From: Macrostomum lignano
Lineage: Eukaryota
NCBI GenBank assembly: GCA_002269645.1
Contig: NIVC01001280.1
Span: 62,001-126,000 of the forward strand
Reading direction: 5' to 3'
Length of the DNA: 64,000 bases
Shown here piece after piece: positions 22,917 to 62,277 of this stretch (its first letter is position 1; the number at the start of each line of letters is the position of its first letter). The position numbers were made by a program, and so were the translations under genes. The notes under the pieces are model-generated. The model searched no databases. It saw nothing but the letters and a program-made list of their open reading frames with translations, and was not told the DNA's origin.

Positions 22917-23619
22917 GTCGTCACCTAGCTTCGCTTTCCGCAGCATACTCCACCAGGCTGCGTGAACTGCACAGAACGCGATGTCACTTCGATTTTTGGT
23001 TGCAGCTTGAGATCTGCGGCTCTAAGAGCGCTGCTGCCAGTTGAGACATCGGCGAATACCACGAACAGCTTGACCATCGGTGTTCACACATGTCTGGCCG
23101 ACCGAGGGCTCTGAAGTAAAGCGAGACCGCGTTCGCGTACGCCTAGTAACTCTGAAACACTAACAGCTGCGTGGACAACTCGGCCAGGTACCTGACCACG
23201 TGTACCGGTTGCGCTTGCGCCGAAGTAAAGTGCTGGGAGTTGCATAAACGCTGCAGGACGCGAGCTGTGATGGGTAATTTTGTTTCGTGCGGGGCGCAAA
23301 GGCGCTTTCGATTGTATCTGTTTTCAACGAATGTCTTGAAAGTCGCTATATCTATGTATGTTTTATCAGTCATTAAACGCCGCGGAATTTCTGCCACTGC
23401 CGTGAAAAGACGGGAAGTTAAACAGGACAGAATACTTCAAGTAGATTATTGCACAGCGTCTGAATTTCTAGCATTAGGTGAGATCACCTCGCTGAGTGTG
23501 CACAGTATGGGGCTTGACTTAGCTGCAGGGGGCGTCCGGCGGATGCATCGAGGAGGCGGAAGAGACCGCCCATTCCGCTAGCCCCTGGCGACCAACGACT
23601 TCCGTTGAAGTGGTGTCGC

Positions 23620-26600: not shown

Positions 26601-27327
26601 CAATCGGTGTTCCTGACGTTCCGACTCCAAGTGACCTTAGGCTTTTGCTTGGTCGGCCCAATGCAAAAGCGGATAAAGTGGTGGTCCGAGAGCGAGTCCT
26701 CGTCCCACACTCGCCAGCCCGTGACTGCGGAAAGCAGTCCGGGTGAGGCGATGGTGGTGTCGATGACTTCGGCCCACCGCCCATTATTGAACGTTGGTGC
26801 ATTGCCCACGTTACAGAAGTTGAGGTTAGTGCTGCTGACATAGGCCAGCAGCTCCTCGCCTCTGCTATTGATGTTCTTGCTGCCCCAATGCAGGTGGTGT
26901 GCGTTCACATCCCCTGCAATGAGCAGTTCGAACCGATGGGACGCAACATAGTCAGTAAGGTTGACTAACGCGTCGCAGACAACTGGGGCATCGCCCGGGA
27001 AATAGGCAGAAGCTACCAGCACAGGTTTATTGGGAATGAGGTTATTGATTTGAACAACACAGATGTCCCCAGTCGAGAGATCAGGTCTCATCCATGCTTC
27101 AAAAGCTTTTGCAGCAAAGACCAGAGATCTTGGGCGAGGCTGAGAGTCCGCCATGCAAAAACAGTGGTAGCCAGATGCACATTATTTGGCTTACCTTTAG
27201 TCATCCAGGGCTCCTGTACGAAGACCAGGCCCGGAAGCTGTTGCTCTGCCGTGCGCATCAGGTTGACCGACGCCGCCACGCAGTGCTGGGTGTTGATCTG
27301 CAGACACCAGGTAGTCGCTGGCATCAT
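23620..27327 (-). pseudogene. LINE ORF2 (APE endonuclease - reverse transcriptase - RNase H - CCHC) with two frameshifts
   Basis: EN motifs LQINTQH, VQEPW, AGDVNAHH, SDHH; RT motifs KAPGPDGI, RPISL, QHAFR, FLDIEGAFD, GGPQGGVL, YADD, CLGL; RNase H motifs YTDGS, QSEVLAI, HSDSQAAL, WIPGH...GNERAD; C-terminal CPFC...HFICHC. Frame breaks near 27177 and in the G9 run at 26545-26553. Confidence 0.92.
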
Positions 27328-33045: not shown

Positions 33046-33173
33046 CATGCTTGGGCGCCACCTTGGGATTCACTTGGCCATTTCTATTGGAATACTATTC
33101 CGTCCAATAGCGACTTACATGTGTGTGTTGCCAATAGAAATGGCTGGGTGATTCCCAAAGTTGCGCATGTATG
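33046..33173. mobile_element. Deleted copy of the 31013-31172 palindromic MITE
   Basis: Shares CCTTGGGATTCAC...CCAATAGCGACTTACATG...CCCAAAGTTGCGCATGTATG; flanks AAATCAAT / ATATCAAT (1 mismatch). Confidence 0.75.
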
Positions 33174-33195
33174 ATATCAATGATACATGTTGGAA

Positions 33196-34924
33196 TAAAC
33201 TTGACCGGCGACACGCCAGAAGCGCGCAGAAATGAGCTACGCGACTTCTTCGCCGATATCGTCAACGCGCCGCCACCGCCTCTGCCAGAAGTGATGCCAC
33301 TGCCGCTCGAGACGGCGCTGCCGCCGCAGAAAGATTTCAACACCCAGCCAGTGACCAGCAACGACGTTGTGCAGTTCGCTCGCCAGGCGCCGGGAGGTCG
33401 CGCCCCGGGACCGGACGAGGTGCCTATCGAGGTGCTGCGAGTCACAAGGGTCGCCATTGAGGTGGCTCGTGTGATGAACGGTGTCCTTTCTGGAGATGCC
33501 GCGCCCCGCGAGTGGACAACCGCGCACATCGTCGCGATCCCGAAGAAGCCAGGCACGACACGGAAGGAGGAGCACAGGGGGATCTCGCTTATGTCCTGCG
33601 CCGCGAAGCTGTTCAACCGGGTGCTGCTGGCTCGGTTACAGACTGTGCTGGACCAGTTCCTGCGAACTGAGCAGAACGGGTTCCGCCCACATCGCGGCAC
33701 AGTGACGCAGATCCTAGCCCTCCGCCGCATCATCGAGGAGGCGCGCATCCATCAGTCAAGTCTCGTGGTGATCTTCATTGATTTCCTCAAGGCCTTCGAC
33801 TCGCTGGCTCGCGGCGCGCTGCCTCTCGTGCTTCGTGCGTACAATGTACCGGAGCAACTGATTTCCGCCATCATGGCGATGTACCAGGACACGACCGCTT
33901 CGGTGATGACGCCAGATGGACTGTCAGACCAATTCAGCACGTCGTCAGGCGTGCTGCAGGGTGACACTTTGGCGCCTTTTCTGTTTGTGCTGGCACTGGA
34001 CTGGGTGCGGAGAACCGGCCTGCCCAACCTGGATGACGGCTTCCTTTTGAGAAGACGCACGAGTCGGCGGCACCCGGAGAAGCGGCTCTCCGTTCTCGGC
34101 TACGCGGACGACCTCGCGCTACTTTCATCGACGGCTGAAGGTGCCCAGCGGCTGCTTGATGGCCTGACGGCGGCAGCGTCGCGGGTCGGCCTTAAGCTGA
34201 ACGCGCGGAAGACGGTAGTGTTCACGGTGCCCTCCGACTTGCCGGCCGAGATCAATTACCGAGACGCTGCCGGGAATGCTTTTATGCTTACCCGCTGCGA
34301 GCGCTTTGTGTACCTCGGCGGTTCCGTGCCGGACGTTGCCGACGACCTGAAGAGACGACGAGGACTGGCCTGGGCCGCATTTCGATCTGTGCGCTCCGTG
34401 CTCCAATCTGAGGCCCTGGACGACGGGCTCAAGGCTCGGCTGTTTCAGGCAGTCGTCGAGACTGTCCTGTTGTACAACGCCGAGACTTGGACCCTGACGG
34501 ACGCCTTGGAGAGGCAGCTGGACGCTGCACATGCGGCAATGCTGCGTGCGGCTTTCGGAGTGCGCAGCGGCCCAGGCAGCGAGACCAATGCCGCGCTCTA
34601 CACTAGGGCGCGCCTGACGCGGCCTTCTGACCTGCTGCGCGGGCGGCGACTTCGACTGGCTGGTCATGTCATCCGGTCGGAGGCCCGCTGTCCTGAGCCG
34701 CTACACGACGTGCTGCTGCTCAAGCTGCAGGGACCGCGGAGGCGAGGCCAAGGGCGAACGGTGCGATACCCTGACCGACTTTCGAGTGACGCTGGCGCCC
34801 CGGACCAAGCAGGGGGATGCGACTTCCTGAGGGCAATGGCCCAGAGACGCGCTTTCTGACTGCTCCCCCCTTTCTGGCTACTGCGTGGCCGGCGGGAGCA
34901 GTACCTTGTTGTTGTTGTTGTTGT
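33196..34924 (+). mobile_element. 5'-truncated RTE-clade non-LTR retrotransposon (RT domain intact)
   Basis: Open frame to 34859 with RAPGPDEV, HRGISL, EQNGFRP, FIDFLKAFDS, GVLQGDTLAPFLF, GYADDL, FVYLG, LLYNAETW, RRLRLAGHV; short 3'UTR followed by a (TTG)n tail; TSD ATGTTGGAA at 33187-33195 and 34925-34933; no endonuclease domain. Confidence 0.92.
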
Positions 34925-35798: not shown

Positions 35799-38700
35799 AT
35801 GGGCTGCGCCAACTCCAAGGACACCCCGAGCTCCTCGCGGGGCCGCGGTCTGAAATCTGCCCATCAGCTGCAGCCACAGACAGCACAGCTATCGGAGAGG
35901 CAAATCGAGGAGCTGTGGCCGCAGTTCATCAAGGACATGGACATCACCGCCGACCGGGCCAGGGACATGGCCGCTCTGGACACGGACAAGAAGGTCCAGG
36001 CCCTGCAGAACTGGATCACATCCAAGCGGCCGGGACTGTCTCAGACCAACTTCTCAGTCAGGTATTATGTCACTCACCTGCGCAGCCTGCGACACAGCAG
36101 AGGCGCTGGAGCTAGCACAGGGACCGGGACTCTGGAGAAGAGCGACCTGCTGAAGAGCCTGGAGAATAGCCTCAGAACTTATACTGTCGAGTAAGTTATC
36201 TTTGAGAGTAATTGGCCTTTGACGTACGCACACGTACACAAGTCCCCAGCTTTGACTCCATAAAGTGCAGTCAAGCTAAACCGGCTGCAAATGATAAATT
36301 TAGCGTTAGTCCGAGCCTTTCCATTTTCACCATTTTCTTCGTAGATGGCTTGAAGAATTCCTGGAAGAAGGAGGCCTGGAGCTGCTGATCGAGTACCTTG
36401 GCAAAACGCTTGATGATCTCATAAGGTGAGCTGGAGGTCTTAGCATTAAAGTATTTGAATTAGCTCGTGTACGTTGATTGCCCATTGGATCTGCATTAGC
36501 TGTAGCTGGGCAAGTATAGCTGGGCTCATTATTATTCCGGCCACGCAGCGCCGAGGAGCAGGCAAACGGCAGTTTGTCGGGCCGCCGTCCCACCGCCAGC
36601 AGCAACACCGGCACTCCGATGGCCGGTGGCGGCAGCGCAAAGAGGTCGGCTAAGCGGCAGCGGCAGCCGCCGTCCAGGGCAGGTGAAGGCGACGAGGCTC
36701 TGCTGGGCGACCTGCACAACGGCATCAAGTGCATGCGGGTCTTCTTCAACAACCAGCGCGCCTGCGAGCGGACCTTCCAGGACAGCGCCGCCGTGAGCAT
36801 CATCGTTCAGTGTCTGCTGCACCCCAGGTATAGCACCAAAACTTTCGCGCTGGAGCTGCTGGCTGCGCTCTGTATGCTTGATGGCATGCACGCCAGGGTG
36901 CTGGAGGCCTTCGACTGCCTGAAGGAGCGGATCGGGGAGGCCAGGCGGTGGGAGACCCTCATTGTCTACTTCAGGCATCACGACAGTCTGCCGCCTGAGC
37001 AGTACAGTATTGAGTTCATGATCAGCTGTGCCAGGTTCGTCAATGTTGTACAGAACATCAACAATGAGCAGCTGGGTCTGCGGGTCTTCCTCCAAGCTGA
37101 GTTTGCCCAGCTGGGCCTGGAGGATTTTTTGCACAGCCTGCAGGGCAAATACGAAGACTGCCGGCTCAACAGTCAGCTCGAGGCCATTGCTGACAACACC
37201 ATAGACATTGTGAGCCTGTATCACGACTCCCTAGCCAAGCAGGCCGCGGTGTCCCGGGCGGTGAGTCTGGAGGATGAGCTGTACTCTGTGCAGGCCAGAC
37301 TTCGGCGTTTGGAGGACGAGTCTGTGGCCCGCATGGCCGAGCTGGGCCAGCGCCTGCAGCGTTCCGAGGCCGAGTGCTCCAGCCTGCGCCAGGAGAAGGA
37401 TGCTGCTCTCGCCCGCATGCGGCACAGCCTGCGGCAGGCCAGCCAGACGGCTTCGGATCGCGAGTCGGAGGTGGACCGCCTGCTGGACGAGATGAGCCGC
37501 CGCCTGCGTGACTCGGAGGCCGAGCTCGTCCGCACAAAGGAGGAGCTGCAAGCTGCCAAAGACGCCTCGACTGCCGCTGCTGCATCAGTGCCATCACTGC
37601 CTGTCCCGCAACCAGCTGCACCCGCCGCCCCAGCGCCGCCTCCGCCCCCTCCGCCGCCTCCCCCGCCGCCAGCTGGGGTGCCTCCTCCCCCACCGCCGCC
37701 TCCGCCGCCACCGCCACCAGTGTCGCTGGGAGGTCCAGCTGGGCTGAACCTGAAGGACGCGGTGATTCCGAAACACCGCCTGCCCCTGTTCAACTGGACG
37801 GTGCTGCCCCCTAACCAGTGCCGCGGCACCATCTTTATGGACATGCAGCCCGATCGGGTCCGCCAGGGCCTCGACTGCGACGACTTCGAGGAAAAGTTTA
37901 AGCTGGCCGCCGCTGCCGCCACTTCTGCAGCCTCTACCGGGGGCGACGGAGACTCCACGGACGACCCGCTTGCCCGCATGCGGAAGGACAAGCCGACCCT
38001 CCTCAGCCACGACCGCCTGCGCAGCGTCGCCATCCTGCGCCACAAGCTCGATGCTCTTCGTCTCAGTCCCGACCGCCTCGTTGCCGCTTTGGACAGTTTG
38101 GATCCGGCTGCGGTGCCCACTGAGCTGGCTGAGATTCTGCTTAGGCAGGGCGTGCCAACTGCCGAGGAGCTGCAGGTGAGTCCAGTGCAAAGCCGAGTTA
38201 TCGCTCGTAATTTTGTCTATAATTCGTCTGGCGCGCAGAAGCCAAGTAAAGGTTTACTCAACATACTCGTAGGTCACTACTTATGTTGACTTTTTGACCA
38301 CTGTTATACACCGTTGATTTTGCAGGCCTACAGGCAGTACGAGTTCGTTGAAGGTCGCAGCGTGAGCGAGCTGCACGAGCTGGACCAGCTGCTGATCCGC
38401 CTCTGCCGCGTCGAAGGCCTGGAGCGCCGCCTGCAGGCTCTCCGTTACATGGGGCAGTTTGAAGAGGTGCTGCACGGCGTTGAGTCCCCGCTTCGTTACG
38501 TCATTACGGCCTCTATGAACCTGGAGAAGTCCGCCAAGTTCAAGCGGCTGCTGGAGCTGCTGCTCACGCTGGGCAACTACCTGAACAGCCACAAGCGGGG
38601 CGTGGCCTATGGATTCCGACTGTCCAGTCTGTCCATGCTGCCCGACACCAAGTCCGGGGACAAGAAGTGGACGCTGCTGCACTACCTGGTTGACCTTATC

Positions 38701-45053: not shown

Positions 45054-48000
45054 ATGTCCGGACACATCGCGAACTCGAAGGCGTTTGAGAACGTAACGAT
45101 TCCTGTTGATGCGGCTTCGTGCGCAACTGCCAACACTGTTGAACTGCAGCTTGCAGTGCTGAAGGATCCGGCGGCAGAGGCAACCACGGGTGCAAAAGGG
45201 GGAAATGAAGTCACTGAGAAAGTGCATGAGCAAGCCGAACTAGACCTGGATGCCCATGAGGACTTCGAGGAGCTGCCTCCTCGTGACGACTGCTGGCACC
45301 GGCTGTGCGTCCGGCTGCTCTGCTCCGCCGAGGGCGCGGCTCATCGCAAGCGGCTTGTCGGCATCGCCAAGTGGCTGACGGCGGCAGCGGCGGCGCTCGC
45401 CTTCCTGGCCTACTTGGCTTACTGCAGCTTCCTGCTGGCCACAAGATTCCGCGGCACCCCGGAGGCTGAGCAGAGCATCCGCCTGCTGTGGGTGTCGGCC
45501 TTAGCCATCCTGCTGGCTGTCGTCAGCTGGGCTCCTCGGTGCTGTGGGCCCTCACTGGAGCGAGCGGCTGCCCAGTTAAAGCAGCTGCGCAGCCGCTACG
45601 ACCGCCTCTTCCAGCTGGCCAGCACCTTCTGGTGGGTGCCGGAGGCCTTCATTGCCGCCTCCTTCCTCGTGTGGATGGCCGTGCAGAATCCCGCCAATAT
45701 CACGTCCGCTTGTGGTCTGCTGCTTCTTCTGCTGCTGTCGCTCGCCGTCTCGGCTCACCCTGAAAGGGTAATAATAGATATTATTGTCCTTTATAAAGTA
45801 GTATAAATATATATGTACATAGATACTAGCGCATTAGGAAAATAGAAGTATTAAATTTTTTGAGTCGCAAACGTACTGCCTCTAGTCTCAATTATACTGG
45901 AACCAGAAGATTGAAGCTGCTTCCAAAATGTGACAGGTTAACTGGAAGCCGGTGCTGGGCGGGATTTTGATCCAGCTGGTGTTCGCGGTACTGATTCTTA
46001 GAACCAGAGCAGGATTTTTGTTCTTCAACTTCCTGGGCGACCGCACTTCCGAGTTTTTGGAGCACTGCGCCGCAGGCTCAAAGTTCCTTTTCGGTGGTGA
46101 CTACGAGCATCACTTCTTCGCATTCAAGGTGCGTAAGGTGCAAGCCAGATTTTAATGCATAACCACACATTACTCCCAGCTTTTACTATTTCCACCTCAA
46201 GATTCTGCCAATCATTGTGTTCTTCTCCTCCGTGCTGACTGTGCTGTTCCACCTCGGAGCTCTGCAAGCTGTCATTTGCCGCATCGGAGCCTTCATGCAG
46301 ACGGTGATGGGCACCACGGCTGCCGAGAGTATGGTGGCCTCTGCCAACATTTTTGTGGGGCAGGTGAGTTCCCATGGCCTAATGCAGGAATCTATTTTCC
46401 TTTGACAGTTTAGCATTTCGGGCACACATGTACAAGTATATGCAAGTATATATGAGCCAGTGTATTTCATTAACACTTGCAACTTCTGAGCCCAGTTCTG
46501 CCGTTCAGTCCACAGTTGGCAGCAAGCAGTTTGCATACTAGCTGCTGCACATGCAGTAAGTACAGCCAGGGAATCCGGCATGTTTTAGGACTGCTGATTG
46601 CCTGCTGCCTCTATGAGTACATGATGGAGACGCAGCGGCCGCAGATACAGAATTTGTCTTTAGGCTGGGTCCAGGGTATAATTTCTAGGGCAGAGAACTT
46701 CAAATGTCTACGAGCGTATGGAGCAATTCGCGCAAGCATCACACGACAATAATCCAGTGACAATCCAATAATCTAGTGACAATCCAATAATCCAGTGACA
46801 ATCCAATAATCTAGTGACAATCCAATAATCCAGTGACAATCCAATAATCTAGTGACAATCCAATAATCTAGTGACAATCCAATAACCTAGTGACAATCCA
46901 ATAATCTTGTGACAATCCAATAATCCAGTGACAATCCAGTGACAATCCAATAATCCAGTGCCAATCCAATAATCTAGTGACAATCCAATAATCCAGTGAC
47001 AATCCAATAATCTAGTGACAATCCAATAATCTAGTGACAATCCAATAACCTAGTGACAATCCAATAATCTTGTGACAATCCAATAATCCAGTGACAATCC
47101 AGTTACAATCCAATAATCCAGTGCCAATCCTATAATCTAGTGACAATCCAATAATCTAGTGACAATCCAATAATCTTGCGACAATCCAATAATCTAGTGA
47201 CAATCCAATAATCTAGTGACAATCCAATAATCTTGCGACAATCCAATAATCTAGTGACAATCCAATAATCTAGTGACAATCCAATAATCTTGTGACAATC
47301 CAATAATCTAGTGACAATCTAATAATCTAGTGACAATCCAATAATCTTGCGACAATCCAATAATCTAGTGACAATCCAATAATCTAGTGATAATCCAATA
47401 ATCTTGCGACAATCCAATAATCTAGTGACAATCCAATAATCTAGTGACAATCCAATAATCTTGTGACAATCCAATAATCTAGTGACAATCCAATAATCTA
47501 GTGACAATCCAATAATCTAGTGACAATCCAATAATCTAGTGACAATCCAATAATCTTGTGACAATCTAATAATCTAGTGACAATCCAATAATCTTGCGAC
47601 AATCCAATAATCTAGTGACAATCCAATAATCTAGTGACAATCCAATAATCTAGTGACAATCCAATAATCTAGTGACAATCCAATAATCTTGCGACAATCC
47701 AATAATCTAGTGACAATCCAATAATCTAGTGACAATCCAATAATCTAGTGACAATCCAATAATCTTGTGACAATCCAATAATCGAGTGACAATCCAATAA
47801 TCTAGTGACAATCCAATAATCTAGTGACAATCCAATAATCTTGTGACAATCCAATAATCTTGCGACAATCCAATAATCTTGTGACAATCCAATAATCTTG
47901 TGACAATCCAATAATCTAGTGACAATCCAATAATCTAGTGACAATCCAATAATCTAGTAACAATCCAATAATCTAGTGACAATCCAATAATCTAGTGACA

Positions 48001-51000
48001 ATCCAATAATCTAGTGACAATCCAATAATCTTGTGACAATCCAATAATCTTGTGACAAAACATTTGCTGCGCAGACAGAGGCTCCACTGATGGTGCGGCC
48101 GTTCCTACCGCTCATGACCAAGTCCGAGATACACAGCGTGATGACCTCAGGGTTTGCCACCATCGCTGGGGGTGTCCTGGCCGCGTACATCAGCATGGGG
48201 GTGCCCGCCAGGCACCTGCTCAGTGCCAGCGTCATGTCCGCTCCCGCCGCCCTGGCAGTCAGTAAGCTGGTCTACCCGGAGACTCGCAAATCGCGGACTC
48301 GAGTCGAGGACGTGAGGCGCCTCAAGCTCGCTCGCTACCGCGGCATCGTGGAGGCTGCTGGCGCAGGCGCCATCGCCTCGCTGTCCGTCATCGGCGCCAT
48401 CGCAGCCAACCTCATCGCGTTTGTCAGCATCCTGGCCTTCATCAATTCTACGATTACATGGCTCGGCTACAGAGCGGGCCTGAGCTTCCCGCTCACATTC
48501 GAGTTCGTGCTGTCGTTCTTGTTCTGGCCGCTGGCGCTGGTCATGGGAGTCCCTCCCAGAGACTGCCGACAGGTGGCCGAGCTGATCGGCATCAAGACTT
48601 TTCTAAACGAGTTCATCGCCTACCAGCGGCTCGGTGAGCGGTCTGTTTGTGCGGTTTGTTTTTAATTTCTTCCCAGAACTTTAGAGCTTAACTCAATGTT
48701 TTTAGGCGACATCAAGAAGAACTACAATGCTCTTTCGGCAGCAATGGGGAACCTGACAGAGGTGGAGCACAGCTGGAGTGGAACAGATGTAGTGTTTCCA
48801 TCTCTGAACCTTACGCTGCCGGGCGGAGTTCTTTTCGAGGTGAGCGGATACCTTAATAGACATTTTGAAGTCCTGAGAATAAGGAGATTGCCATCATAAA
48901 CTGTCATACGAGTACTGCGCATAAGCTTTCACTTTTCCATTGTTTTTTGGGCTGACAAAGTATCATTACATCTCTCCTAAACTGAACGCTTTTTAGTTCA
49001 CTTTTATTCAATCTTGAAATCAGATCTCTTAACTGTCTCACAAGCTAATTTGGAGCATTTTGAAGTTCAGAAGTTCTGCTTTTACCTCGCGTACTACTAG
49101 CGCAGTATATTTATTTATGCTTTAAAATTCACAGGACAAATCGTTTGTGATCGCCACTTACTCTCTGTGCGGCTTCTCTAACCTGGGCAGCATGGGCATC
49201 CTGATTGGCGCCCTGACCGCCATGGCGCCCAGCCGCAGGGCCGACATCGCCCACTGCGGCCCGAGAGCCCTGGTTGCAGGCAGCATCGCCTGCTTCATCA
49301 CCGCCTGTATTGCAGGTAAGCAGCTCGTACTAGTGGGCTGCAGCGGGATTCATTATCTGTGTGTTATCCGTCATCAGGACCTTTCTGAGTAAGTGCGAGA
49401 CTGTTGCTTCTTGGTGTGGATCTGTGGTGAGTGCAAGGCGAGTGCATTAGGTCTGCATTCGTGATATTTCGGACGACAGAACGACCGCAATTTGAATTCA
49501 GAACCTCGAAACTTCGCGGCTTGTCCAAATCCCCCAACGCCTCCACTGTTTGCTTCACCCTGAGTGCCTTGACTCTTGACCAGATTGACTCTTCACGCTT
49601 GCTTCTTGTGTCCTGGGTCTTGTGGTTGGATGACACACGACTTTTAATGATGCACATGCTGTATGCATGGTGTATGCATTGTGTGTGCATGGTGTGTGCA
49701 TGGTGTATGCATGGTGTATGCATGGTGTATGCATGGTGTATGCATGGTGTATGCATGGTGTATGCATGGTGTATGCATGGTGTGTGCATGGTGTATGCAT
49801 GGTGTGTGCATGGTGTATGCATGGTGTATGCATGGTGTGTGCATGGTGTATGCATGGTGTATGCATGGTGTGTGCATGGTGTGTGCATGGTGTGTGCATG
49901 GTGTATGCATGGTGTATGCATGGTGTATGCATGGTGTGTGCATGGTGTGTGCATGGTGTATGCATGGTGTATGCATGGTGTGTGCATGGTGTATGCATGG
50001 TGTATGCATGGTGTGTGCATGGTGTGTGCATGGTGTGTGCATGGTGTATGCATGGTGTATGCATGGTGTATGCATGGTGTATGCATGGTGTGTGCATGGT
50101 GTGTGCATGGTGTGTGCATGGTGTGTGCATGGTGTATGCATGGTGTATGCATGGTGTATGCATGGTGTATGCATGGTGTGTGCATGGTGTGTGCATGGTG
50201 TGTGCATGGTGTATGCATGGTGTATGCATGGTGTGTGCATGGTGTATGCATGGTGTATGCATGGTGTATGCATGGTGTGTGCATGGTGTGTGCATGGTGT
50301 ATGCATGGTGTATGCATGGTGTATGCATGGTGTATGCATGGTGTATGCATGGTGTATGCATGGTGTATGCATGGTGTATGCATGGTGTGTGCATGGTGTA
50401 TGCATGGTGTGTGCATGGTGTGTGCATGGTGTGTGCATGGTGTATGCATGGTGTGTGCATGGTGTGTGCATGGTGTGTGCATGGTGTGTGCATGGTGTGT
50501 GCATGGTGTGTGCATGGTGTATGCATGGTGTATGCATGGTGTGTGCATGGTGTGTGCATGGTGTATGCATGGTGTATGCATGGTGTATGCATGGTGTATG
50601 CATGGTGTGTGCATGGTGTGTGCATGGTGTGTGCATGGTGTATGCATGGTGTGTGCATGGTGTGTGCATGGTGTGTGCATGGTGTGTGCATGGTGTGTGC
50701 ATGGTGTGTGCATGGTGTATGCATGGTGTATGCATGGTGTATGCATGGTGTGTGCATGGTGTGTGCATGGTGTATGCATGGTGTATGCATGGTGTATGCA
50801 TGGTGTATGCATGGTGTGTGCATGGTGTATGCATGGTGTATGCATGGTGTGTGCATGGTGTATGCATGGTGTATGCATGGTGTGTGCATGGTGTATGCAT
50901 GGTGTATGCATGGTGTATGCATGGTGTGTGCATGGTGTGTGCATGGTGTATGCATGGTGTATGCATGGTGTGTGCATGGTGTATGCATGGTGTATGCATG

Positions 51001-51921
51001 GTGTGTGCATGGTGTGTGCATGGTGTGTGCATGGTGTATGCATGGTGTATGCATGGTGTATGCATGGTGTATGCATGGTGTGTGCATGGTGTGTGCATGG
51101 TGTGTGCATGGTGTGTGCATGGTGTATGCATGGTGTATGCATGGTGTATGCATGGTGTATGCATGGTGTGTGCATGGTGTGTGCATGGTGTGTGCATGGT
51201 GTATGCATGGTGTATGCATGGTGTGTGCATGGTGTATGCATGGTGTATGCATGGTGTATGCATGGTGTGTGCATGGTGTGTGCATGGTGTATGCATGGTG
51301 TATGCATGGTGTGTGCATGGTGTATGCATGGTGTATGCATGGTGTGTGCATGGTGTGTGCATGGTGTGTGCATGGTGTATGCATGGTGTATGCATGGTGT
51401 ATGCATGGTGTATGCATGGTGTGTGCATGGTGTGTGCATGGTGTGTGCATGGTGTGTGCATGGTGTATGCATGGTGTGTGCATGGTGTATGCATGGTGTG
51501 TGCATGGTGTGTGCATGGTGTGTGCATGGTGTATGCATGGTGTGTGCATGGTGTGTGCATGGTGTGTGCATGGTGTGTGCATGGTGTGTGCATGGTGTAT
51601 GCATGGTGTATGCATGGTGTATGCATGGTGTGTGCATGGTGTATGCATGGTGTGTGCATGGTGTGTGCATGGTGTGTGCATGGTGTGTGCATGGTGTATG
51701 CATGGTGTATGCATGGTGTATGCATGGTGTATGCATGGTGTGATCATGGCGTGAGCATGGCGTGTGCATGATATGTTAAATCGCTCAGTATTTTAGCGAA
51801 AGATATTGTAAGCTTGATTTTTTGCTCTTCAAAGGTTTGTGAATAGAAACATTACGGTGCAAACGTTTCGAAATTTTCAGGCCTTTTCTTCACTGACGCA
51901 GATCTGGTGCTGAATTTTTGA
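45054..51921 (+). CDS. SLC28A: Concentrative nucleoside transporter (SLC28/CNT family), paralog A; 7 exons
   Basis: Exons 45054-45767, 45937-46128, 46202-46363, 48075-48633, 48706-48839, 49135-49315 and 51881-51921. CNT motifs: VNWKPV, AFKILPIIVFFSS, ANIFVGQTEAPL, GFATIAG, HLLSASVMSAPAALA, KTFLNEFIAY, YSLCGFSNLGS. Confidence 0.93.
46749..48057. repeat. Intronic minisatellite, 19-bp unit (CAATCCAATAATCTAGTGA), roughly 68 copies
   Basis: Direct periodicity in CNT-A intron 3, with CTAG/CCAG/CTTG variants. Confidence 0.97.
49655..51769. repeat. Intronic satellite, 11-bp unit GCATGGTGT(A/G)T, roughly 190 copies
   Basis: Direct periodicity in CNT-A intron 6; explains the 700-800 aa ORFs found in five frames. 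Confidence 0.98.
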
Positions 51922-52870
51922 TGCGCCGCTCTAGTAGGGCGTCAGGGCTCCTGAACAATCTGAGAGACTATATTATAATTTGAACTCTTAAAAATAAGAG
52001 TACTCGTACCTAGTGCGGGTAAAGGCATGTTTCAGTACAAAAATCCCATCTTTTGAATTGAGTTTCTGCAAGCGCAGAGAGGTTTCCTAAAGTGTTTGAA
52101 TTGAACTCCTGCTTCTTTCGAACAAGACTGTTCAAAATACCTGTAAGAGGTAAAATGGTTTATTTTATCGCATTATAATCGTTGCATGCTTCGTTTCGAA
52201 TCAGCCACGGATCGAAACTAAACTAATGGAGTTAATTATTTGTAATTTCTCACAATTGATATCCTTACTGAGACGATTCTATGGAATCGACTATAGTCAG
52301 TGTTGCATATGTACAATAAGCCAACCGATATTTTCTCAAAATTAATTTTTGCTCGGTCAAGCATCATTATTCCGTGATTTTCCCAGTCTGTTGATAGTTT
52401 TTAAGGCTTCCCAATTCAAATTTGTTTTATAAAAATTAATCACGCGTCTTTATAAGACCATAAATTATTAATTATCTTGGATTTTGCAACAATTTGTTGG
52501 CTTGTAGGTGCCCCATTTTGAATTAATAAAATGAAAAACCGGTTAATTTATTTCGTAACTGAAAATTTCATCAAAAAGTAATCAAAATATTTCGTCTTTA
52601 CCACCGCGACTACTTCTGGTTTGAAACCTTGCAAAAATCAATACTCGCATTCATGCTGCAATTTCGCGTGTTGTTTCTTTTTGAATCTCAACTGGTTTGT
52701 ATTAGTTTTAATAAGTTGGTTTATTGGCTTATATGTGAAATTTCGGTATAACAAAGCAACCCCTTGGTGCATGATCCGTCTGATTGTTTTCAAGTACGAG
52801 CAAGCACCTCTCGAGAATAGGTATAGCTTGTCAAGAAGTCTGCAAGCGGTCGGGGCTGTTGTATATTCTG

Positions 52871-55480
52871 TGGGCTGTTGTCCTCAGGACCTCGGGTCCT
52901 GCAAAAAATGGCGTGGTGAACTATTAGTACAGTATGAGTCTGGTATGGCCCACAAAATACACCAGAATGCTCAATCGCTGGCGGAATGCGTATTGAACTG
53001 TAATCCCTACTTTTCCTGTGAAGATTACGAGTAAGACTCGTAATTTTAATATTATTGGTGTGGTACACAGGTTCATCATCTTGCAAATTTTCAGGGCTGT
53101 TTCACAAACAGTGCAGCAAAAACTGAAGGGGCGAACTGTAACACGAAGGGGCGAAGTGGAAGAAATTCTGAGGGTATGGCCCCTTTCCCAGCCACAGATG
53201 CTCACGCATGCCTCTTTCGGCTGTACGAGCGTACGGGAACAAGAGACTGTCTCCTATTTTAACCTTGCAAGGCGCACTTCAAAGGCTACTTGTTCCGATG
53301 GGTGCTAAGTCAGGTCACTTGGGTCTTGCGGAGCAGATTCGTTGGAGCCGAGGTCCAGGTGTGACCATAAACTCCCCCTATAGGTTCCAGTGTAACTCCA
53401 TGCGGATGGACGCTTGGCCAGGGAGTACACATTTAGACTGGTCGCAAACGTTTCCCTTGGGTCATTGGTCCCCCTGCGCAGGGTATCAGCTATGGTTATT
53501 AATAAAGATAAAAAATAAGAGAAGATAAAAAAAATTTCTTTTTCTCTTGGGGACTTGCCGCTTGGTTTGGGGTAGTGACCTTGCGATTCTGCGGTCATAC
53601 CACCTGCTACCATCGGGGACGCCTCGGCGAGACCTGTGAAGCAATCCCTGTGCGGTGCCTCTGGATAAGACACCCGCCGCTCCAACTACCAAAAAGCAGC
53701 TGAGCACCACCTCTGGAGCTGCCCACCGCCGACTTAATAAGGCACAGCGCGCCAAGGAGGGCAGAAACCCAACCGGCGCCAGAAGCCAACGGCCCCGCGG
53801 CTCCGGAAGCTTCCTGGTCTGGAGCGGAGGCGGATGAGGGTCCTGAGCCCACTGAAGTCCCTGCTAAGGACATAGAAGCTGATACAGCCGGAAAGGGGGA
53901 CAGTCCACCTGCCAAAGACTCCGCCGAACCAAGACGCAACAGGAGGTTGTCATTCTTGGGAAGGACACGCGTCTGTCCCCCGATCAACTGAAGCAGGTGA
54001 GCTGCACAATTGATGGCTCACTCTAAAAGGCACACCTAAACATTCACTAAGATGCAACGAGGGACAGTGATTCTGACTCGGGACGGCGGCTTCTTGATCT
54101 GCTGTCCGAGCAGAGCTGGGACCTTAACCTAGGCTGCTGCAGGACGAACGCCCCCGGACCAAGAGTCATACGAGTATAATCTGGGTTTCGGCGAGGTGCG
54201 TCGTTACCTCTGCCGATAAGTTCCGTAGCGGACTGCTTGCAGTCAATCGAGAGCTCCCCGCCATGGGCCTAGAGGGGCACGACACCCTAAAATGCGCCGA
54301 AAGCACCGGCTTCGCAGCCATCCTGGGGTTGTCCGACACCTAAATATTTAAGAAGTCTTATTTGGTTGTAGTAACTCAGCGTTTATTGAGAGTTTTGAGA
54401 AAGAGAGCGAGAGAGGGTTAACATTGAATTTAGCTCTGGCGTAGCTCAAACAAAACTGAGTTGTACAGGTCGGGAGTCGGAGACCATAGACATAATTAAG
54501 AATTCTATTCTAGAAAATTCCAGAAGGGAAACTGGGATACACTTCCATGTTAATAGAGATGTCTATTTTAAGATAAAATATTACTTATTAAAGCAACACC
54601 TTTAACACTTAATGTAAGCGTTACTCGCACGACAGCCTCATCAATGCCGGCTCTAAAAGCTGCGACGAGGCCGACCCTCCACGTGGTATCGAGCACGGCA
54701 GGCGGCAGGCAGTACAGCCATGGCGCCATCTGATTCAGCGTACAGCTGAAGCGGTCCGCACTCTCAAAATTAGCCAACTAGGGTGAGAGGTCGCCTGGAC
54801 GCCTAGGCGCATCAGCTTGTCCAGGGACCTCAGCGCAGGGCTGACTAGAGACGGATCCGCCTTCCCAGGCGGCTGGCAATGGGCCAATCCGAGGTGGAGA
54901 ACCCCGCAGCCGGTGGACGAAGGGCAGCGAAAGTCGCCTATACTGCCTTACGACTGGTCAGGGGCCTTCTGCTGAGGAGCCCATGGATACATGTACCAGT
55001 GGTTCAACCCGAAGCTAGTGAGCGCCGAGGAGGAGGAACTCCTGGCGGCCGCAACGCCCGATCTGCAATGATGCCAACCTGGTGTCTGGAGATCAACACC
55101 CATCAATGCTTGGCGGCGTCAGTCAATCTGATGACAGAGCAACTGCTCCAGGGCCTGACTGTCCAGAAGCCCTTCGACTTGGGACATCTGCATTTTCTAA
55201 ATCCAGGAATTGTGACCTTCTTTCCAAGAAATCCACGCTGGTAGCATCCGCCTAATTTCCAGGCGATACTCCAGTGATCAGCGACGCGCTCATTGATTAT
55301 GCGCGTCATTTAGAGATGCTCATTGCAGGGGATGTGAAAGCGCACCAACCGGCATTGGTGTGGCAACAACATTAACAACAAAGGCGAAGAGCTGCTGGCC
55401 TATGTCAGCAGCATGAACCTCAACTTCTGATACTAGGGCAGCACAACCACGTTCAACAAAGGACGGTAGGCCACCGTCAT
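52871..55480 (+). mobile_element. Degenerate, 3'-deleted copy of the 23515-29320 LINE family (5'UTR, ORF1 and part of the endonuclease)
   Basis: Collinear similarity to the reverse complement of 29320 to about 26780 (e.g. CAGGACCTCGGGTCCTG, ACCTGCTACCATCGGGGACGCCTCGGCGAGACC, GATCTGCAATGATGCC, GGCGAAGAGCTGCTGGCCTATGTCAGCAGCA); many indels and two foreign insertions; no RT. Confidence 0.9.
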
Positions 55481-57098
55481 CTGGAGACGGAACATCATTA
55501 TCATAAAATATAAAAATCTACACTTGGCATGCACATTTTTTAATAATAATAATAACAATAGAAGGTGGAGAGGAAGGTCAAGTAGCCGAAATGAGCGAAA
55601 AAGTGTCCGAAACCTCCTACCACAGAGGTTGCTGCATTGTGATGTATCAACCCTGTCCGCTTCCCCTTTCCTTAACAGCACAGGTTCGGCCGTATTGGCT
55701 GGAGCCGCCAGCGGCTGAACACTGGTGAACACCCAGAGGATTGAAGGGTACAAAGGCCGCACCATAGCCTGCGGGTTGTTAGCGCAACAGGTGATCTTTC
55801 GCGGGCAATCCTACTACCTGCTTTGGCTGGGATGGGCCCTGGTTACCTTGCTCGTCCTTGCGCTCTCTCTTATCAAGGCTGTCACCCTAATCATATTGCC
55901 GCCTTCTGCTTGTGTCTGCACCTTCCTACTTTCTTATCTATACACTCCACTCCTTGTCTTTGTGACTCTTAGTTTAGTGGAAGTTTTTCTTATATAGAAT
56001 AAACTTCAGGGCCGTACAAGCCTCTATAGCAATTGGTAGTTTTTTTTTGCCAGTTAAAGTCAGTGCAACTTAAATAATTTCCCATCCTTTCCCATTAAAA
56101 GAGGTAAGTTGAATACTTTGGATTCTATGATCTTATATTAAAAAAAATAAGTGGACAAACTAAAGGCAATAAGACACTCAAGGCAAGCATGCAGACACTG
56201 GTCAGGGTTGATGAAGACGCCTGAATAAGCTGGCAAGCAACTTTGCTGAATGGAAAGGAGAAACTGGCGAATCAGCGGACTGTCTGTAGTTGTGCTGTGC
56301 GTTTTACTGTTGGCAGACAGTAAAACCCCAAGTTGGTCTAGCAGTAGAGCTGTACAAGTCTGCTTCAATCAACCCCTGTCCCACTGCCACTGTGTTCATG
56401 CAGGCGAATGCATTTGCGAGGAAATATTTGACATTGGCATTTGAAATTGACACTGGGAACCGAACCACTTGGGATGAGGGTCACGAATCAACCAAAAGGT
56501 TGATACCAGCTTTCAAAATTGAGCCCGTGCATTCGATTTAAAACGCAGGAATAAAAACTTTTAGTTCGTTATAAACAACGAACCGTATAAGTCTCGTGAA
56601 CTTCAATCGGCGCATCTAAATTTTAATTGACCTCAGTATAGCAGTAAACTGCTTAAGAATCTTAATCGCCGAGAAAACCGAGAAAACTATTTTTGCTCAA
56701 GAATCGTCTCTTTTGACTTGCAAAACATCTGGCCTAAACTTGTAGTAAGTCTTAAAAGTTCCTGCAATCTTTACTCTAAATTTTATTTTAATATCCGGGA
56801 AATTTCTCCCCGATTAATTTCCAAAATGCGTTCTAAATAAGTTCTCGTACCAAATTTTGCAAAATAGTTCAGACTTTTAAAAGTAATTGTACCAGTTTGG
56901 TGAATGGTTTCCGAAATATACTATCAAAACTTTTGTTCGAATTTTTCGTTGCTTCCTAAAGCTTCCTCTAATTTTAATCCCGAAAAGCAAGTACAGCCAA
57001 GGATTTAGAGCAAGGGCTCTGCAAGTTGCTTTCGTACAAGTAAAATTTTTCTAGCCAGAGAACAACCAGTCTACCCAAAAATCATTCGCCCCTCAGCA

Positions 57099-60000
57099 AT
57101 GCAGTTGGACATTCAACGAACTTCAAACCCAGCAGCTGATGAGGCGGCATTTGGAGTGGCGGACGAGGTTGCTGACGTGGACTTCGAGGAGCTGCCACCA
57201 CGTGACGACTGCTGGCACCGGCTGTGCGTCCGGCTGCTCTGCTCCGCCGAGGGCGCGGCTCGTCGCAAGCGGCTCGTCGGCATCGCCAAGTGGCTGACGG
57301 CGGCAGCGGCGGCGCTCGCCTTCCTGGCCTACTTGGCTTACTGCAGCTTCCTGCTGGCCACAAGATTCCGCGGCACCCCGGAGGCTGAGCAGAGCATCCG
57401 CCTGCTGTGGGTGTCGGCCTTAGCCATCCTGCTGACTGTCATCAGCTGGGCTCCTCGGTGCTGTGGGCCCTCACTGGAGCGAGCGGCTGCCCAGTTAAAG
57501 CAGCTGCGCAGCCGCTACGACCGCCTCTTCCAGCTGGCCAGCACCTTCTGGTGGGTGCCGGAGGCCTTCATTGCCGCCTCCTTCCTCGTGTGGATGGCCG
57601 TGCAGAATCCCGCCAATATCACGTCCGCTTGTGGTCTGCTGCTTCTTCTGCTGCTGTCGCTCGCCGTCTCGGCTCATCCTGAAAGGGTGAACAGCTATCT
57701 ATTTTTTCCAGAGTGAATTCTTTGAATCTTACGGGGTGTGAATAGTAGAAACCACAACTTTTTCACAACTAGAAGGAGTTCAGAAGCCGAGAAATGTTTA
57801 TTTTTTAGACAACCCCCCATCTCAAATTCGGATCCTTGCGAACACACGCCGCACACGTACACAAATACGCCAGGGGCACCTGTACGAAAATGATCGATAA
57901 GGTTCGATGAATTTTATTGTCAAATATTCTGTAAGTAGCGGAGCGCCCTGATAACGTGAATCGGTGAGTGGCCGATGCCCTGGGCGAGTTGTGGTGCTTT
58001 TTTGTTCCCTTTGAATTGATATGAGGCAGCAGGTGATGTCAGCCTACGAGGCTGAGCTGAACCTGAGAATGTGGTAGCATTAGCTACTCTCGCGTGGCTA
58101 GTGTCTTCCAGGCCATCTGGATCTGGGTAGTGTTCTCCAGGATTGTCTGATTTTGGATCAAAGAATATTTCCTGGTAACTGCACTTTGTTCGCAACTTCT
58201 TCCCATCAATGGGAAGTCCAACTGGGGTTATGACCCGCCTGGGCTTCCCTAGTTGGTGACGTTTGCTGCAGGAATGAGGAGAGGCTCTTGATGACATACC
58301 ATTGGCCTCCAATTCTAAATTCTGCGGCCATGCATCTCGCCGCGCTTTTCCAACTTTTTTTAAATTCCAGCTTATTGGCTTGCTGGAGGACAAAATCTAT
58401 TATACACTAGAACTTGGTTTTCAGGTAAACTTCAGACCTGTAGCTGGCGGTGTGGTTCTTCAGCTGATCTTTGCCGCCCTGATTCTGAGAACTTCGTGGG
58501 GCTACAGCTTATTCAACTTCCTCGGCGATCGGGCTGCGGAATTCATAGCTCACTGCCAGCAAGGCTCAAAGTTCGTATTCGGTGAGACGTATCAGGAGCA
58601 CTTCATTGCGTTTGCGGTAAGCAGCTGTCCAAAATGTCAGTAATAATTTCTCATTCTTCAATTCATTCACTCGTGTGAATCCAACTGAAACCTCCAGGTT
58701 TTACCGATAGAGATTTATTTCTCTGCAGTGATCACTGTGCTTTTTCACCAGGGAATCCTGCGGGCTGTTATTTGCAACGTCGGAATTGTCCTGCAGTTTA
58801 TTTTGGACTGCACGGCGGCTGAGAGCATGGTGGCCTCCGCCAACATCTTTGTGGGACTTGTAAGCTGACACTGCTATGCGCTTTACTGTAGGTGTTGCTT
58901 AGGAGTAGCTACTCAGGGTGTTCGCTCGAAAGGGACTAAATTGTCAAGGTGAACTTGCTGTGCCAATTATTTAATTTGTTTACGAGCGTATTTCTACTTT
59001 TGCCACTCCTATGCGAATGCTAATTTGTGAAAAAATAGTTGGCTGCATTGCACTCGCAGTCAAATAGCTTTGCTAGCGTGTCTGATGAGGGAGATACCAA
59101 ACTTTGCGGAAAGGTAAAGGCAATATTTGAACAATATATACGAGTACCTGAGCCAGCCGGTAGGAAGACGTTACTCGTAAAAGACTCTCTAAGTATGTTG
59201 CCTGCGTAAGCCCCAACTGTTTGGTTGAAGTAATTTTAGGTCATCAGCCGAACTGAAGTGAAAGGTTGCAAATATAATAAGGTACCCTGTGTAAGCAGTG
59301 AGGGCAGCGAGCCGTACAAAATAAAGTTGAGATACGCTCATAGTTCTCCCCCCCCCCCCAGATAATCCAGTGATTTATCGCTTAACTCACTGGCAATGAA
59401 ACTGTCTATGACGGAGCAAACATTGACTTTTGAGAAAAGTTCGCTTTGGAAGGCCCCATATTTTAGGGTCCTACACAAGGGTGCTGACAAGGAAGCCTTT
59501 GGAGTCAAATACATTATCAAGCGATTAAAATTTTGGTAGCATTTACTATTAACCTTTTACTAAAATACTTTTCATTTTGTCAATGAAACGCTTGGGAAGA
59601 TTAAAAATACATATCTACTGGTGGCTCATATAGTATATTCGCACATAGTTGATTTTAACCTTCCGCAAAGCTCCAAAGTCGATATTTTGCTCCACGAAAT
59701 ATTTCTCAGGCTGAAGCCGCTATGATGGTGCGGCCTTTCCTACCGCTCATGACCAAGTCCGAGTTGCACAGCGTGATGACCTCCGGACTTGCCACCATTG
59801 CCGGGGGCGTCATGGCCGCGTACATCAGCATGGGGGTGCCCGCCAGGCACCTGCTCAGTGCCAGCGTCATGTCCGCCCCCGCCGCCCTGGCAGTCAGTAA
59901 GCTGGTCTACCCGGAGACTCGCAAATCGCGGACTCGAGTCGAGGACGTGAGGCGCCTCAAGCTCGCTCGCTACGGCGGCATCGTGGAGGCTGCTGGCGCA

Positions 60001-62277
60001 GGCGCCATCGCCTCGCTGTCCGTCATCGGCGCCATCGCAGCCAACCTCATCGCGTTTGTCAGCATCCTGGCCTTCATCAATTCTACGGTTACATGGCTCG
60101 GCTACAGAGCGGGCCTGAGCTTCCCGCTCACATTCGAGTTCGTGCTGTCGTTCTTGTTCTGGCCGCTGGCGCTGGTCATGGGAGTCCCTCCCAGAGACTG
60201 CCGACAGGTGGCCGAGCTGATCGGCATCAAGACTTTTCTAAACGAGTTCATCGCCTACCAGCGGCTCAGTGAGTGGCTAATTTTGTTTTAATTAGTTACT
60301 CTTAGATTTTCGACATCTTTTCCGCTAACCCAATCCAATTTCAGTAACCATCAAGGAGAATCATCGAGCATTCTTATCAGAATTCGGAAACGGCACTGAT
60401 CTGGTTTACGCCTGGTCCGGGAATGACATTGTTATACCGGTTCTCAATCGCACCTTCTCTGGCGGTCTTCTTTTTGAGGCATGTTTTGCAAGTTTTTTAT
60501 TTGCTTTTCTATTTACGAATGCTTTTCTATGCATTCGTAGTGAAAGTTCAGTTGCTAGATACGGAGCTATGTGTTGAAATCATGGAATCCCATGGATGGA
60601 GTTATTCCATTTGAGCATTAAGAAATTCACATAAAGTACCCAGTTTCCTTATGAGGGGAGAGCCCCTCGATGGTGAATGGTCATTGGTTAATGGACATTA
60701 TTTCTTTTTTATTGGCTTCACTTTCAGCTTCCAAAATACGCCCTAAGTATCGTACACGTAGTGCCTCATTAAATTTTACGGTAACTTTTGCAGCGGAGTC
60801 CTTTTCTAGGTCCTTACATAAGGTGTTCACTCTGTCCACTGGAAACAAAAGATCGATTTCCAAGACTAAACTTCCAGTAAGGAGACACGACTAAACGGCC
60901 CAGGAGCGACCTACTTGGCTGCTTTGATGGTGGTGATACTGAGAGCCAGATAGTTGACCCTCGTATCCAGCTGGGGCCGCGGTGGCTAAGATTAGCTCTT
61001 CTACCTGCCACTGCAAAGTATACCAGAGCAGAAAGCAACCAGGATACTCGGCATGACTAATGGTCTCTAGCCAGTTCGAGACTTATTGCAGACACGCGCA
61101 GCTGCCTTTTACGGGTATATTCAGAGCGCCGCCTGCTTCCGCTCAGCTTTTCCGCCGATCAATCCGGGAGCATGGGAACCCCTTGGTCCACAGGGACTGC
61201 CAGGACCAGCCTCATCGACTGGGAACTCCGCACTGGACAGCAGAATCAAGCCTTTCTTTGAGAACACCTTCCTCGCGGCTTATGAAAACTTTGAATTAAC
61301 AGTCACAGGCAGACTTTTGCATCAATTCAAGCTCTTTAAAGCCATCATCAGCACTACCGAACGAAGTCAAAGCTGATGAAGACACATGTGGTCAACCTGC
61401 TGATGAAATTTGGAGGCTTGGCAAGCAGGCTGCACTGAGGTGCACTGCTGATTACCGCACAGGGGTGTACAGAATACACTAGCGCTTATGGGAAAAATCG
61501 AATCGAAATATTGAATATCTCGACGGTGCTGTTTTGTTTCAAGTCTTGTTGGAGAAGGTGCTCAACAAAAAGTTAGCCTGTGTTCTTGAATTTCGTGTGC
61601 CTGCGTTGCGCCGTTTCGCGCAGCAAAAAAATTGACAAGGGGGGGGAATTACGAGTACCTTGGTAGTTCTATCGTTAATTCATTTCTTTCAACGAAATTT
61701 GCTTTTCGTGAAAAAAATAAATACAAGTAGGCACAAATCAGTGACAACATTCAGATTGAGGAAGTTTTGATTTTCAAGCTGCAGAAATCTATGCTTCAGA
61801 GGAAACTGCTGTGGTTCTGTATAATGAAGCCCGAAGCCAATTCGTGTAGAAACTCGTCTATTTTTGGTTATCTTGCTTATGCAGCGGATAAAGAATGGTA
61901 CTATCTTTCTGTAGCCAAGGAATTTGCAATTTTATTTATTGCTAACTTTTTGCCCCCTGCAGGGTAGATCCGTCGTGATCGCCACTTACTCTCTGTGCGG
62001 CTTTTCCAACCTGGGCAGCATGGGCATCCTGATTGGCGCCCTGACCGCCATGGCGCCCAGCCGCAGGGCCGACATCGCCCACTGCGGCCCGAGAGCCCTG
62101 ATTGCAGGCAGCATCGCCTGCTTCATCACCGCTTGTGTTGCAGGTAAAAATCCGGAGCTTTTAACGGAAACTAATAGTTGATACCGTGTCTCATATACTC
62201 GCACAGGTTTTCAATATATTTATAACCTAACTTTAGGCCTCTTCGTGACTGATGCGGATCTGGTGATGAACTTTTAA
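57099..62277 (+). CDS. SLC28A: Concentrative nucleoside transporter (SLC28/CNT family), paralog B; 7 exons, one GC-AG intron
   Basis: Exons 57099-57686, 58425-58616, 58698-58859, 59710-60268, 60345-60478, 61963-62143 and 62237-62277. Lengths of exons 2-7 equal those of paralog A, and the assembled frame is open. The start may lie in an upstream exon (acceptor-like CCCCTCAG ends at 57096). Confidence 0.88.
61356..61526. repeat. Dispersed repeat homologous to the 3481-3620 arm (and, inverted, to 3212-3311)
   Basis: Shared GACACAT(A/G)TGGTCAAC(G/C)TGCTGATGAAATTTGGAGGCTTGGCAAG and CACAGGGGTGTAC(T/A)GAATACACT; ends ATATCTCGACGG, the reverse complement of CCGTCGAGATAT at 3212. Confidence 0.75.

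Follow-up and report, generated by a model that had tools for sequence, protein, structure and literature searches.

How can two neighbouring genes look like recent copies in some of their exons and like ancient ones in the exons between? Genes A and B, a tandem SLC28/CNT pair of the flatworm Macrostomum lignano, pose this question: they lie on the same strand with their starts about 12 kb apart, and three exon segments (most of exon 1, most of exon 4 and 169 nt of exon 6) are 97 to 99% identical between them, while the exons in between are diverged and the introns do not align. We analyzed both genes in a window of 64,000 nt, positions 62,001 to 126,000 of the forward strand of contig NIVC01001280.1 in assembly GCA_002269645.1 (Mlig_3_7); coordinates are window positions unless another locus is named. 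We consider it very likely that the pair goes back to an old tandem duplication and was then homogenized, through interlocus gene conversion from a DNA template, in blocks that lie within exons; this conversion is recent and probably still continues.

Gene A (45054-51921, plus strand; PAA69918.1, BOX15_Mlig021777g1, 660 aa) and gene B (57099-62277, plus strand; PAA69919.1, BOX15_Mlig026019g1, 618 aa) have seven exons each. In the splice-consistent models, the exons of A lie at 45054-45767, 45937-46128, 46202-46363, 48075-48633, 48706-48839, 49135-49315 and 51881-51921, and those of B at 57099-57686, 58425-58616, 58698-58859, 59710-60268, 60345-60478 (with a GC donor), 61963-62143 and 62237-62277, all on the plus strand. 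The translation of the A model is an exact match of PAA69918.1, and the B model agrees with PAA69919.1 at 100% identity and 100% coverage. All six introns have the same positions and phases in both genes, and exons 2 to 7 are equal in length. An earlier placing of the last exon of gene A was corrected; a short exon right behind exon 6 was tried and rejected, since the annotated gene extent and the C terminus of a relative lead to 51881-51921, past the 11-nt array that fills intron 6. At intron 5 of gene B (60479-60484), the donor reads GAG followed by GCATGT, whereas its counterpart in gene A is GT; this GC donor is used in the annotated transcript-based protein, and the gene models of the ML2 assembly skip exon 5. 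Both genes belong to the SLC28/CNT family by their domains, with Pfam scores above the gathering thresholds for all three in both A (Nucleos_tra2_N 70.8, Gate 51.9 and Nucleos_tra2_C 228.5 bits) and B (73.5, 35.9 and 226.7 bits), the Gate domain scoring lower in B, and both proteins align to the CNT3 structures from human and cow with E values of about 1e-110. We found no third CNT copy, either in the window or in the adjoining 10 kb downstream.

A self-BLAST between the two halves of the region returned five collinear same-strand matches and nothing else. Three of these are nearly identical, namely 45260-45769 with 57179-57688 (510 nt, 7 mismatches), 48088-48641 with 59723-60276 (554 nt, 15 mismatches) and 49147-49319 with 61975-62147 (173 nt, 5 mismatches), and the other two, 46021-46124 with 58509-58612 and 46223-46359 with 58719-58855, reach 73.6% and 73.0% identity. 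Ungapped comparison of the splice-consistent models, exon by exon, resolved the mosaic further. In exon 1, the last 508 nt (A 45260-45767, B 57179-57686; plus strand) differ at 7 positions and form the first tract, with a silent-site divergence (dS; all dS and dN/dS values are Nei-Gojobori estimates) of 0.030; boundary alignment places a sharp 5' edge of this tract within the exon and its 3' end on the last base of the exon, and the N-terminal part ahead of it is unalignable, at 29.5% identity. Exon 4 holds 17 differences in its first 103 nt and 4 in its last 456 nt. The second tract (A 48180-48632, B 59815-60267; plus strand) contains 3 of these 4 in 453 nt, with a dS of 0.008, and the fourth is the last base of the exon, just outside the tract; the roughly 105 nt ahead of it (48075-48179) are intermediate, at 84% identity. 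Exon 6 opens with 12 nt that hold 6 differences; another 5 are spread over its other 169 nt, which constitute the third tract (A 49147-49315, B 61975-62143; plus strand; dS 0.071), and only 2 of these 5 lie in the central 125 nt or so.

The other exons are much more diverged. Exons 2 and 3 (A 45937-46363, B 58425-58859; plus strand) show nucleotide identities of 62.5% and 67.9%, with dS values of 2.06 and 0.97, respectively; exon 5 (A 48706-48839, B 60345-60478; plus strand), which encodes the HP2-TM10 loop, is 56.0% identical and saturated at silent sites; and exon 7 is 80.5% identical. These figures bear out the exon mosaic claimed in the preliminary description, including its counts of about 7 differences in some 510 nt of exon 1, about 4 in the last 450 nt or so of exon 4 and about 2 in the core of exon 6, as well as the divergence of the N termini and of exons 2, 3, 5 and 7, silent sites included. 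Two details had to be revised. The first 105 nt or so of exon 4, described as heavily diverged, are only moderately so (dS 0.55), and of the statement that the tracts begin and end inside exons only the first half stands, because all three reach within 0 to 10 nt of the 3' end of their exon. In each tract, the 5' part of the exon is diverged and the 3' part is identical, a polarity that with n=3 is not significant.

The contrast between the two classes of sequence is most evident at silent sites. Pooled dS is 0.027 in the three tracts and 1.24 in the diverged parts (exons 2, 3, 5 and 7 and the first 105 nt of exon 4), so that silent divergence in the tracts is about 45 times lower, and the dN/dS of 0.23 in the diverged parts indicates that both copies are under constraint. 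The longest runs free of differences between A and B measure 235, 179 and 159 nt; when the 230 differences were permuted 100,000 times, the null maximum run was 131 nt and none of the 100,000 permutations reached the observed runs, and the same test on third codon positions alone had the same outcome. The divergences of the tracts are not significantly heterogeneous (P = 0.09). GC content at third codon positions (GC3) is 0.82 in the tracts and 0.61 to 0.68 in the unconverted exons, which is the direction expected under GC-biased conversion and is supportive of it without being a defining feature.

Outside the exons, there is no shared sequence left to compare. When aligned locally, the six intron pairs and the 1-kb flanks scored within the range obtained with shuffled sequence, which upholds the claim that the introns cannot be aligned and, with it, the confinement of the homogenized segments to exons. 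An old duplication had been proposed, and three observations agree with it: the saturated silent sites of the diverged parts, the unalignable introns and flanks, and the protein identity over exons 2 and 3, which between A and B (0.66) barely exceeds that between A and its best outgroup from another phylum (0.64). The low silent divergence of the tracts fits the other half of that proposal, namely recent conversion, and so does a four-copy comparison at a second locus.

This second locus, L002 (contig NIVC01000140.1), is 95 to 99% identical to the window, noncoding DNA included, and contains a copy of gene A (A2, PAA89715.1) and exon 1 of a copy of gene B (B2); the copies in the window are hereafter A1 and B1. 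M. lignano has three subgenomes, which differ from one another by 1.9 to 2.4% in single-nucleotide polymorphisms (PMC10733133), and because the divergence of L002 fits this published range, we treated it as a homeolog. Exon 1 of B2 is built like that of B1, with a B-type N terminus followed by the A-like tract (L002 22063-22572). Over the 510 nt of the exon 1 tract, to which the four-copy comparison applies, all pairwise distances among A1, A2, B1 and B2 fall between 1.0 and 1.8%, with paralogs separated by 1.4 to 1.8% and homeologs by 1.0 to 1.4%, values that come near the published divergence of the subgenomes. Differences between A and B that are fixed at both loci occur only at the edges of the tract (45278, 45281 and 45758), and its core contains eight singletons. 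Site 45598 groups A1 with B1 against A2 with B2, being locus specific in both paralogs, and site 45343 groups A1 with B2 against A2 with B1; altogether, two of the five sites that vary between A1 and A2 also vary between B1 and B2 (chance P = 0.0016). In the exon 4 tract, A2 carries the B1 base at one of the four positions at which A1 and B1 differ.

Since the four exon 1 copies are about equally distant from one another and the paralogs are no farther apart than the homeologs, the last homogenization dates from about the time at which the subgenomes diverged, and the variants common to the paralogs suggest exchange since the subgenomes split. The preliminary description had left open whether conversion was recent or ongoing. 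It is recent; three young tracts, one locus-specific site and the shared polymorphism suggest, and do not prove, that it is also ongoing. At 45516 and 45522 (57435 and 57441 in gene B), B1 alone encodes T and I (LLTVISW), whereas A1, A2 and B2 encode A and V (LLAVVSW), so that B2 is here nearer to the A copies than to B1.

How, then, could the mosaic have arisen? The pair would have begun as an old duplication in direct orientation, after which nonallelic conversion, with the genomic DNA of the paralog as template, would have overwritten three exon segments of one copy. We infer this mechanism, which would account for the tract boundaries. Homologous repair, through strand invasion and re-annealing, requires matching sequence on either side of the copied stretch, and because the introns share no similarity, each event would be trapped within one exon and reach no farther than the splice donor. 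Only blocks in which near-identity persists would stay convertible, namely exon 6, which is strongly conserved, and the greater part of exons 1 and 4, which are long; blocks that have dropped under the homology threshold, namely exons 2, 3, 5 and 7 and the N termini, would escape and diverge freely; such loss and keeping of homology may reinforce itself until a stable mosaic results. Exon length as the sole cause was rejected, because exon 6 (181 nt) is converted and exon 2 (192 nt) is not. As the three tracts are separated by introns that cannot be aligned, at least three separate events are implied, and their similar young age fits a recurring process better than a single one.

A template of complementary DNA (cDNA) or RNA had been offered as an option, in which spliced transcripts of the paralog, either reverse transcribed or used directly, would guide the repair. 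Such a template would readily explain why homogenization is exon-only and why the tracts stop at exon ends, which they approach to within 0 to 10 nt, the intron bases shared beyond them being only splice consensus; elements encoding reverse transcriptase also lie nearby in the window. However, all six introns are kept at the same positions in both genes, no tract continues over an exon junction, and exons 2 and 5 are diverged from their first base, while conversion from genomic DNA predicts the same boundaries, with homology ending at the introns. The duplicated ribosomal protein genes of yeast offer a useful comparison: they evolve in concert, their exons being homogenized and their introns not, and a cDNA intermediate has been proposed for them. 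The flatworm pair resembles them in its homogenized coding sequence and divergent introns but differs in that only parts of some exons are homogenized and the neighbouring exons are not co-converted, which argues against a spliced template. We therefore regard templating by cDNA or RNA as improbable; no observation requires it, and the option has no positive support.

An artefact of assembly or polishing, in which reads of one paralog built or corrected the other through a collapsed consensus or through cross-mapping in Pilon, seems even less probable. There are reasons to raise it: Illumina shotgun and RNA-seq reads served to polish Mlig_3_7 with Pilon (PMC5730564), correction based on RNA-seq would touch exons and spare introns, and the genome comprises three subgenomes and many near-identical copies (PMC10733133). 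But polishing corrects reads that are already mapped and cannot raise an identity of some 60 to 70% to 98 to 99% over 450 to 510 nt; the sharp 5' edge of the exon 1 tract falls within the exon; the paralog-specific differences at 45278, 45281 and 45758 are kept at both loci; and PacBio reads would span the whole 5- to 7-kb genes, including their unique introns. Furthermore, the same mosaic is found on the second contig and in the proteins of the differently assembled ML2 genome. Among the proteins predicted from ML2 are counterparts of A1, with 647 identical residues, of A2, with 0 mismatches, and of exons 2 to 4 and 6 to 7 of B; that A and B lie in tandem is confirmed by one ML2 model in which the two are fused.

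The weakest alternative, that no conversion took place and that the tracts reflect either very strong selection at the nucleotide level (on codon usage, exonic splicing or regulatory elements, or RNA structure) or a recent duplication with unusually fast divergence elsewhere, could appeal to the high GC3 of the tracts as a sign of some compositional constraint and to the conserved transport-domain helices encoded by exons 4 and 6, but we give it hardly any credence in view of the 45-fold silent-site contrast between neighbouring exons of the same gene, the introns, which a recent duplication would have left alignable and of which no pair aligns, the variants that the paralogs share across two loci, and the exon 1 tract, whose product, the N-terminal helices, is less conserved than any other part of the protein, with about 20% identity to outgroups and yet 98% between A and B, so that constraint on the protein cannot explain the identity.

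Several points nevertheless weigh against conversion as we describe it. Mlig_3_7 was built from the same PacBio reads as ML2 (PMC5730564), so that the two assemblies are not independent at the level of reads, and patterns at single sites within near-identical tracts of about 500 nt could be cross-mapping errors from polishing. In M. lignano, chimeric scaffolds that combine subgenomes account for 36% of the assembly length (PMC10733133), which weakens arguments from which copies share a locus. The four-copy evidence comes from exon 1 only, and a single burst of conversion just before polyploidization would also produce the star-like pattern seen there. Protein searches returned no orthologs from Macrostomum congeners, so that homeologs stand in for orthologs in the paralog-versus-ortholog test within the tracts: the whole-protein search gave only two M. 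lignano clusters, followed by matches at 43 to 54% identity, a query with exons 2 to 4 matched only short proteins of distant organisms, and a query with exon 1 gave no match.

Conversion between the two genes leaves a further question, namely why certain exons have escaped it. Here, the substrate-binding residues are informative. In human CNT3 (hCNT3), the nucleobase is contacted by Q341, T342 and E343 of hairpin HP1 and by V375, and the ribose by E519, N565 and S568, with F563 also taking part (PMC7440666). As in hCNT1 to hCNT3 and vcCNT, both A and B carry the three CNT Pfam domains and keep the equivalents of the hCNT3 ribose contacts (E535, F601, N603 and S606 in A; E493, F559, N561 and S564 in B), which are the same in A and B and are encoded within the tracts of exons 4 and 6. 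In contrast, the equivalents of Q341 and T342, nucleobase contacts at the HP1 tip, sit inside the unconverted block: the former is the last codon of exon 3 (Q356 in A, L314 in B), and the latter is the first codon of exon 4, at which B (59710) encodes A315 instead of T.

Unlike these transporters, gene B thus carries L-A where the Q-T contacts would be. The tip reads G-Q-T-E-A-P in A, the usual form, and G-L-A-E-A-A in B. Among 108 outgroup CNTs, the first of these contact positions is Q in 61, M in 42, W in 4 and L in none, and 103 of them have the proline. Further departures of gene B fall on positions that are 91 to 100% conserved in the outgroups (F257I, Q282R, G297D, T298C, P318A and F341L), and over exons 2 and 3, its median similarity to them is 0.50, against 0.56 for A. 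Exons 2 and 3 encode, in addition, the scaffold helices TM4-TM6, as judged from the alignment mapped onto the published topology (PMC7440666), so that more than the binding site is involved in their divergence.

It seems plausible that some exons are protected by selection against conversion at HP1. If A and B differed in substrate preference, selection for that difference might remove conversions that cover the hairpin, which would also explain why identity steps up along the gene, with 62 to 68% in exons 2 and 3, 84% over the opening 105 nt of exon 4 and 99% farther on. Passive loss of homology would produce the same gradient, and the two are not separable here. The fuller version of this idea is a split maintained by selection, in which the parts for ribose, sodium and the scaffold would be held identical by conversion, and conversions over HP1 would be purged because the L-A-E-A-A tip of B, which no other CNT that we examined shares, confers a new substrate specificity; we regard it as possible but rather doubtful. 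Were it true, the stepwise rise in identity that follows HP1 in exon 4 would be a footprint of selection.

The introns of gene A and the surroundings of the pair are rich in repeats. Intron 6 contains about 192 copies of the 11-nt unit CATGGTGTATG at 49655-51770 (95% matches), an array that gives rise to long spurious open reading frames (ORFs) on either strand and skews the local GC content strongly between strands, and the intron is about 390 nt shorter at the second locus (2177 versus 2565 nt). Intron 3 holds a minisatellite of about 70 copies of the 19-nt unit CAATAATCTAGTGACAATC at 46747-48058, the counterpart of which (L002 about 12054-13072) is shorter by roughly 350 nt. The homeologous loci also differ by a retroelement insertion in intron 1 of B2 (L002 23017-26784), which is absent from the window copy; it is GC rich and about 68% similar to window positions 23513-26934, where there is an ORF for reverse transcriptase and RNase H. 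Long ORFs with an RVT_1 domain, the first also with RNase H, mark retroelements at 23620-26559 (minus strand) and 33171-34859 (plus strand).

Upstream of gene A lies a formin gene (Drf_GBD, Drf_FH3 and FH2 domains), which runs from 36574-38289 on to about 43 kb and is the same neighbour as at the second locus; a repeat with a period of roughly 30 nt near 39.5 kb within it differs in copy number between the two loci. Farther upstream, two ORFs at 11944-12825 and 13894-15294 (plus strand), each with an AAA_5 domain (dynein-related ATPase), probably belong to a single larger gene as two of its exons. Positions 8421-11794 are occupied by a satellite in which the 29-nt unit TTTAGTTGGCGCATCTCCCCTCCAATCCC is repeated about 110 times, with strong strand asymmetry and a GC skew of about -0.4. 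Further minisatellites are present at 7.4, 13.4, 14.7, 17.0, 17.8 and 18.6 kb, and AT-rich stretches (about 30% GC) at 4 to 6 kb and 30 to 32 kb.

Gene conversion is already well known, and this pair is a clear further example of it; our literature search found no report of conversion in the CNT genes of M. lignano. Mosaic paralogs with islands of divergence that have been read as sites of selection are known from GOT1p1/GOT1p2 of the copepod Tigriopus californicus (PMC3728101), and long-term concerted evolution by conversion is known from mammalian gene pairs (PMC2720389). As in those systems, the flatworm pair combines stretches of low divergence, attributed to interparalog conversion, with islands of high divergence, which are candidates for selection for new function, and its paralogs have variants in common. 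Unlike them, the flatworm pattern is resolved by exon, with unalignable introns as hard boundaries, and the comparison uses the homeologous loci of a neopolyploid rather than populations or species.

The pair thus offers an unusually clean case in which the loss of intron homology splits conversion into single-exon tracts. A duplicate pair that is young in some exons and ancient in others makes any single divergence date or dN/dS value misleading. In M. lignano, a neopolyploid with three subgenomes, tandem paralogs appear to exchange sequence on about the time scale of subgenome divergence, which needs to be considered when copies are assigned to subgenomes and when knockdowns or probes are to be paralog specific, because exons 2, 3 and 5 tell A from B and exons 1, 4 and 6 do not. 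For the CNT family, the unusual HP1 hairpin of gene B provides a testable lead on nucleobase selectivity.

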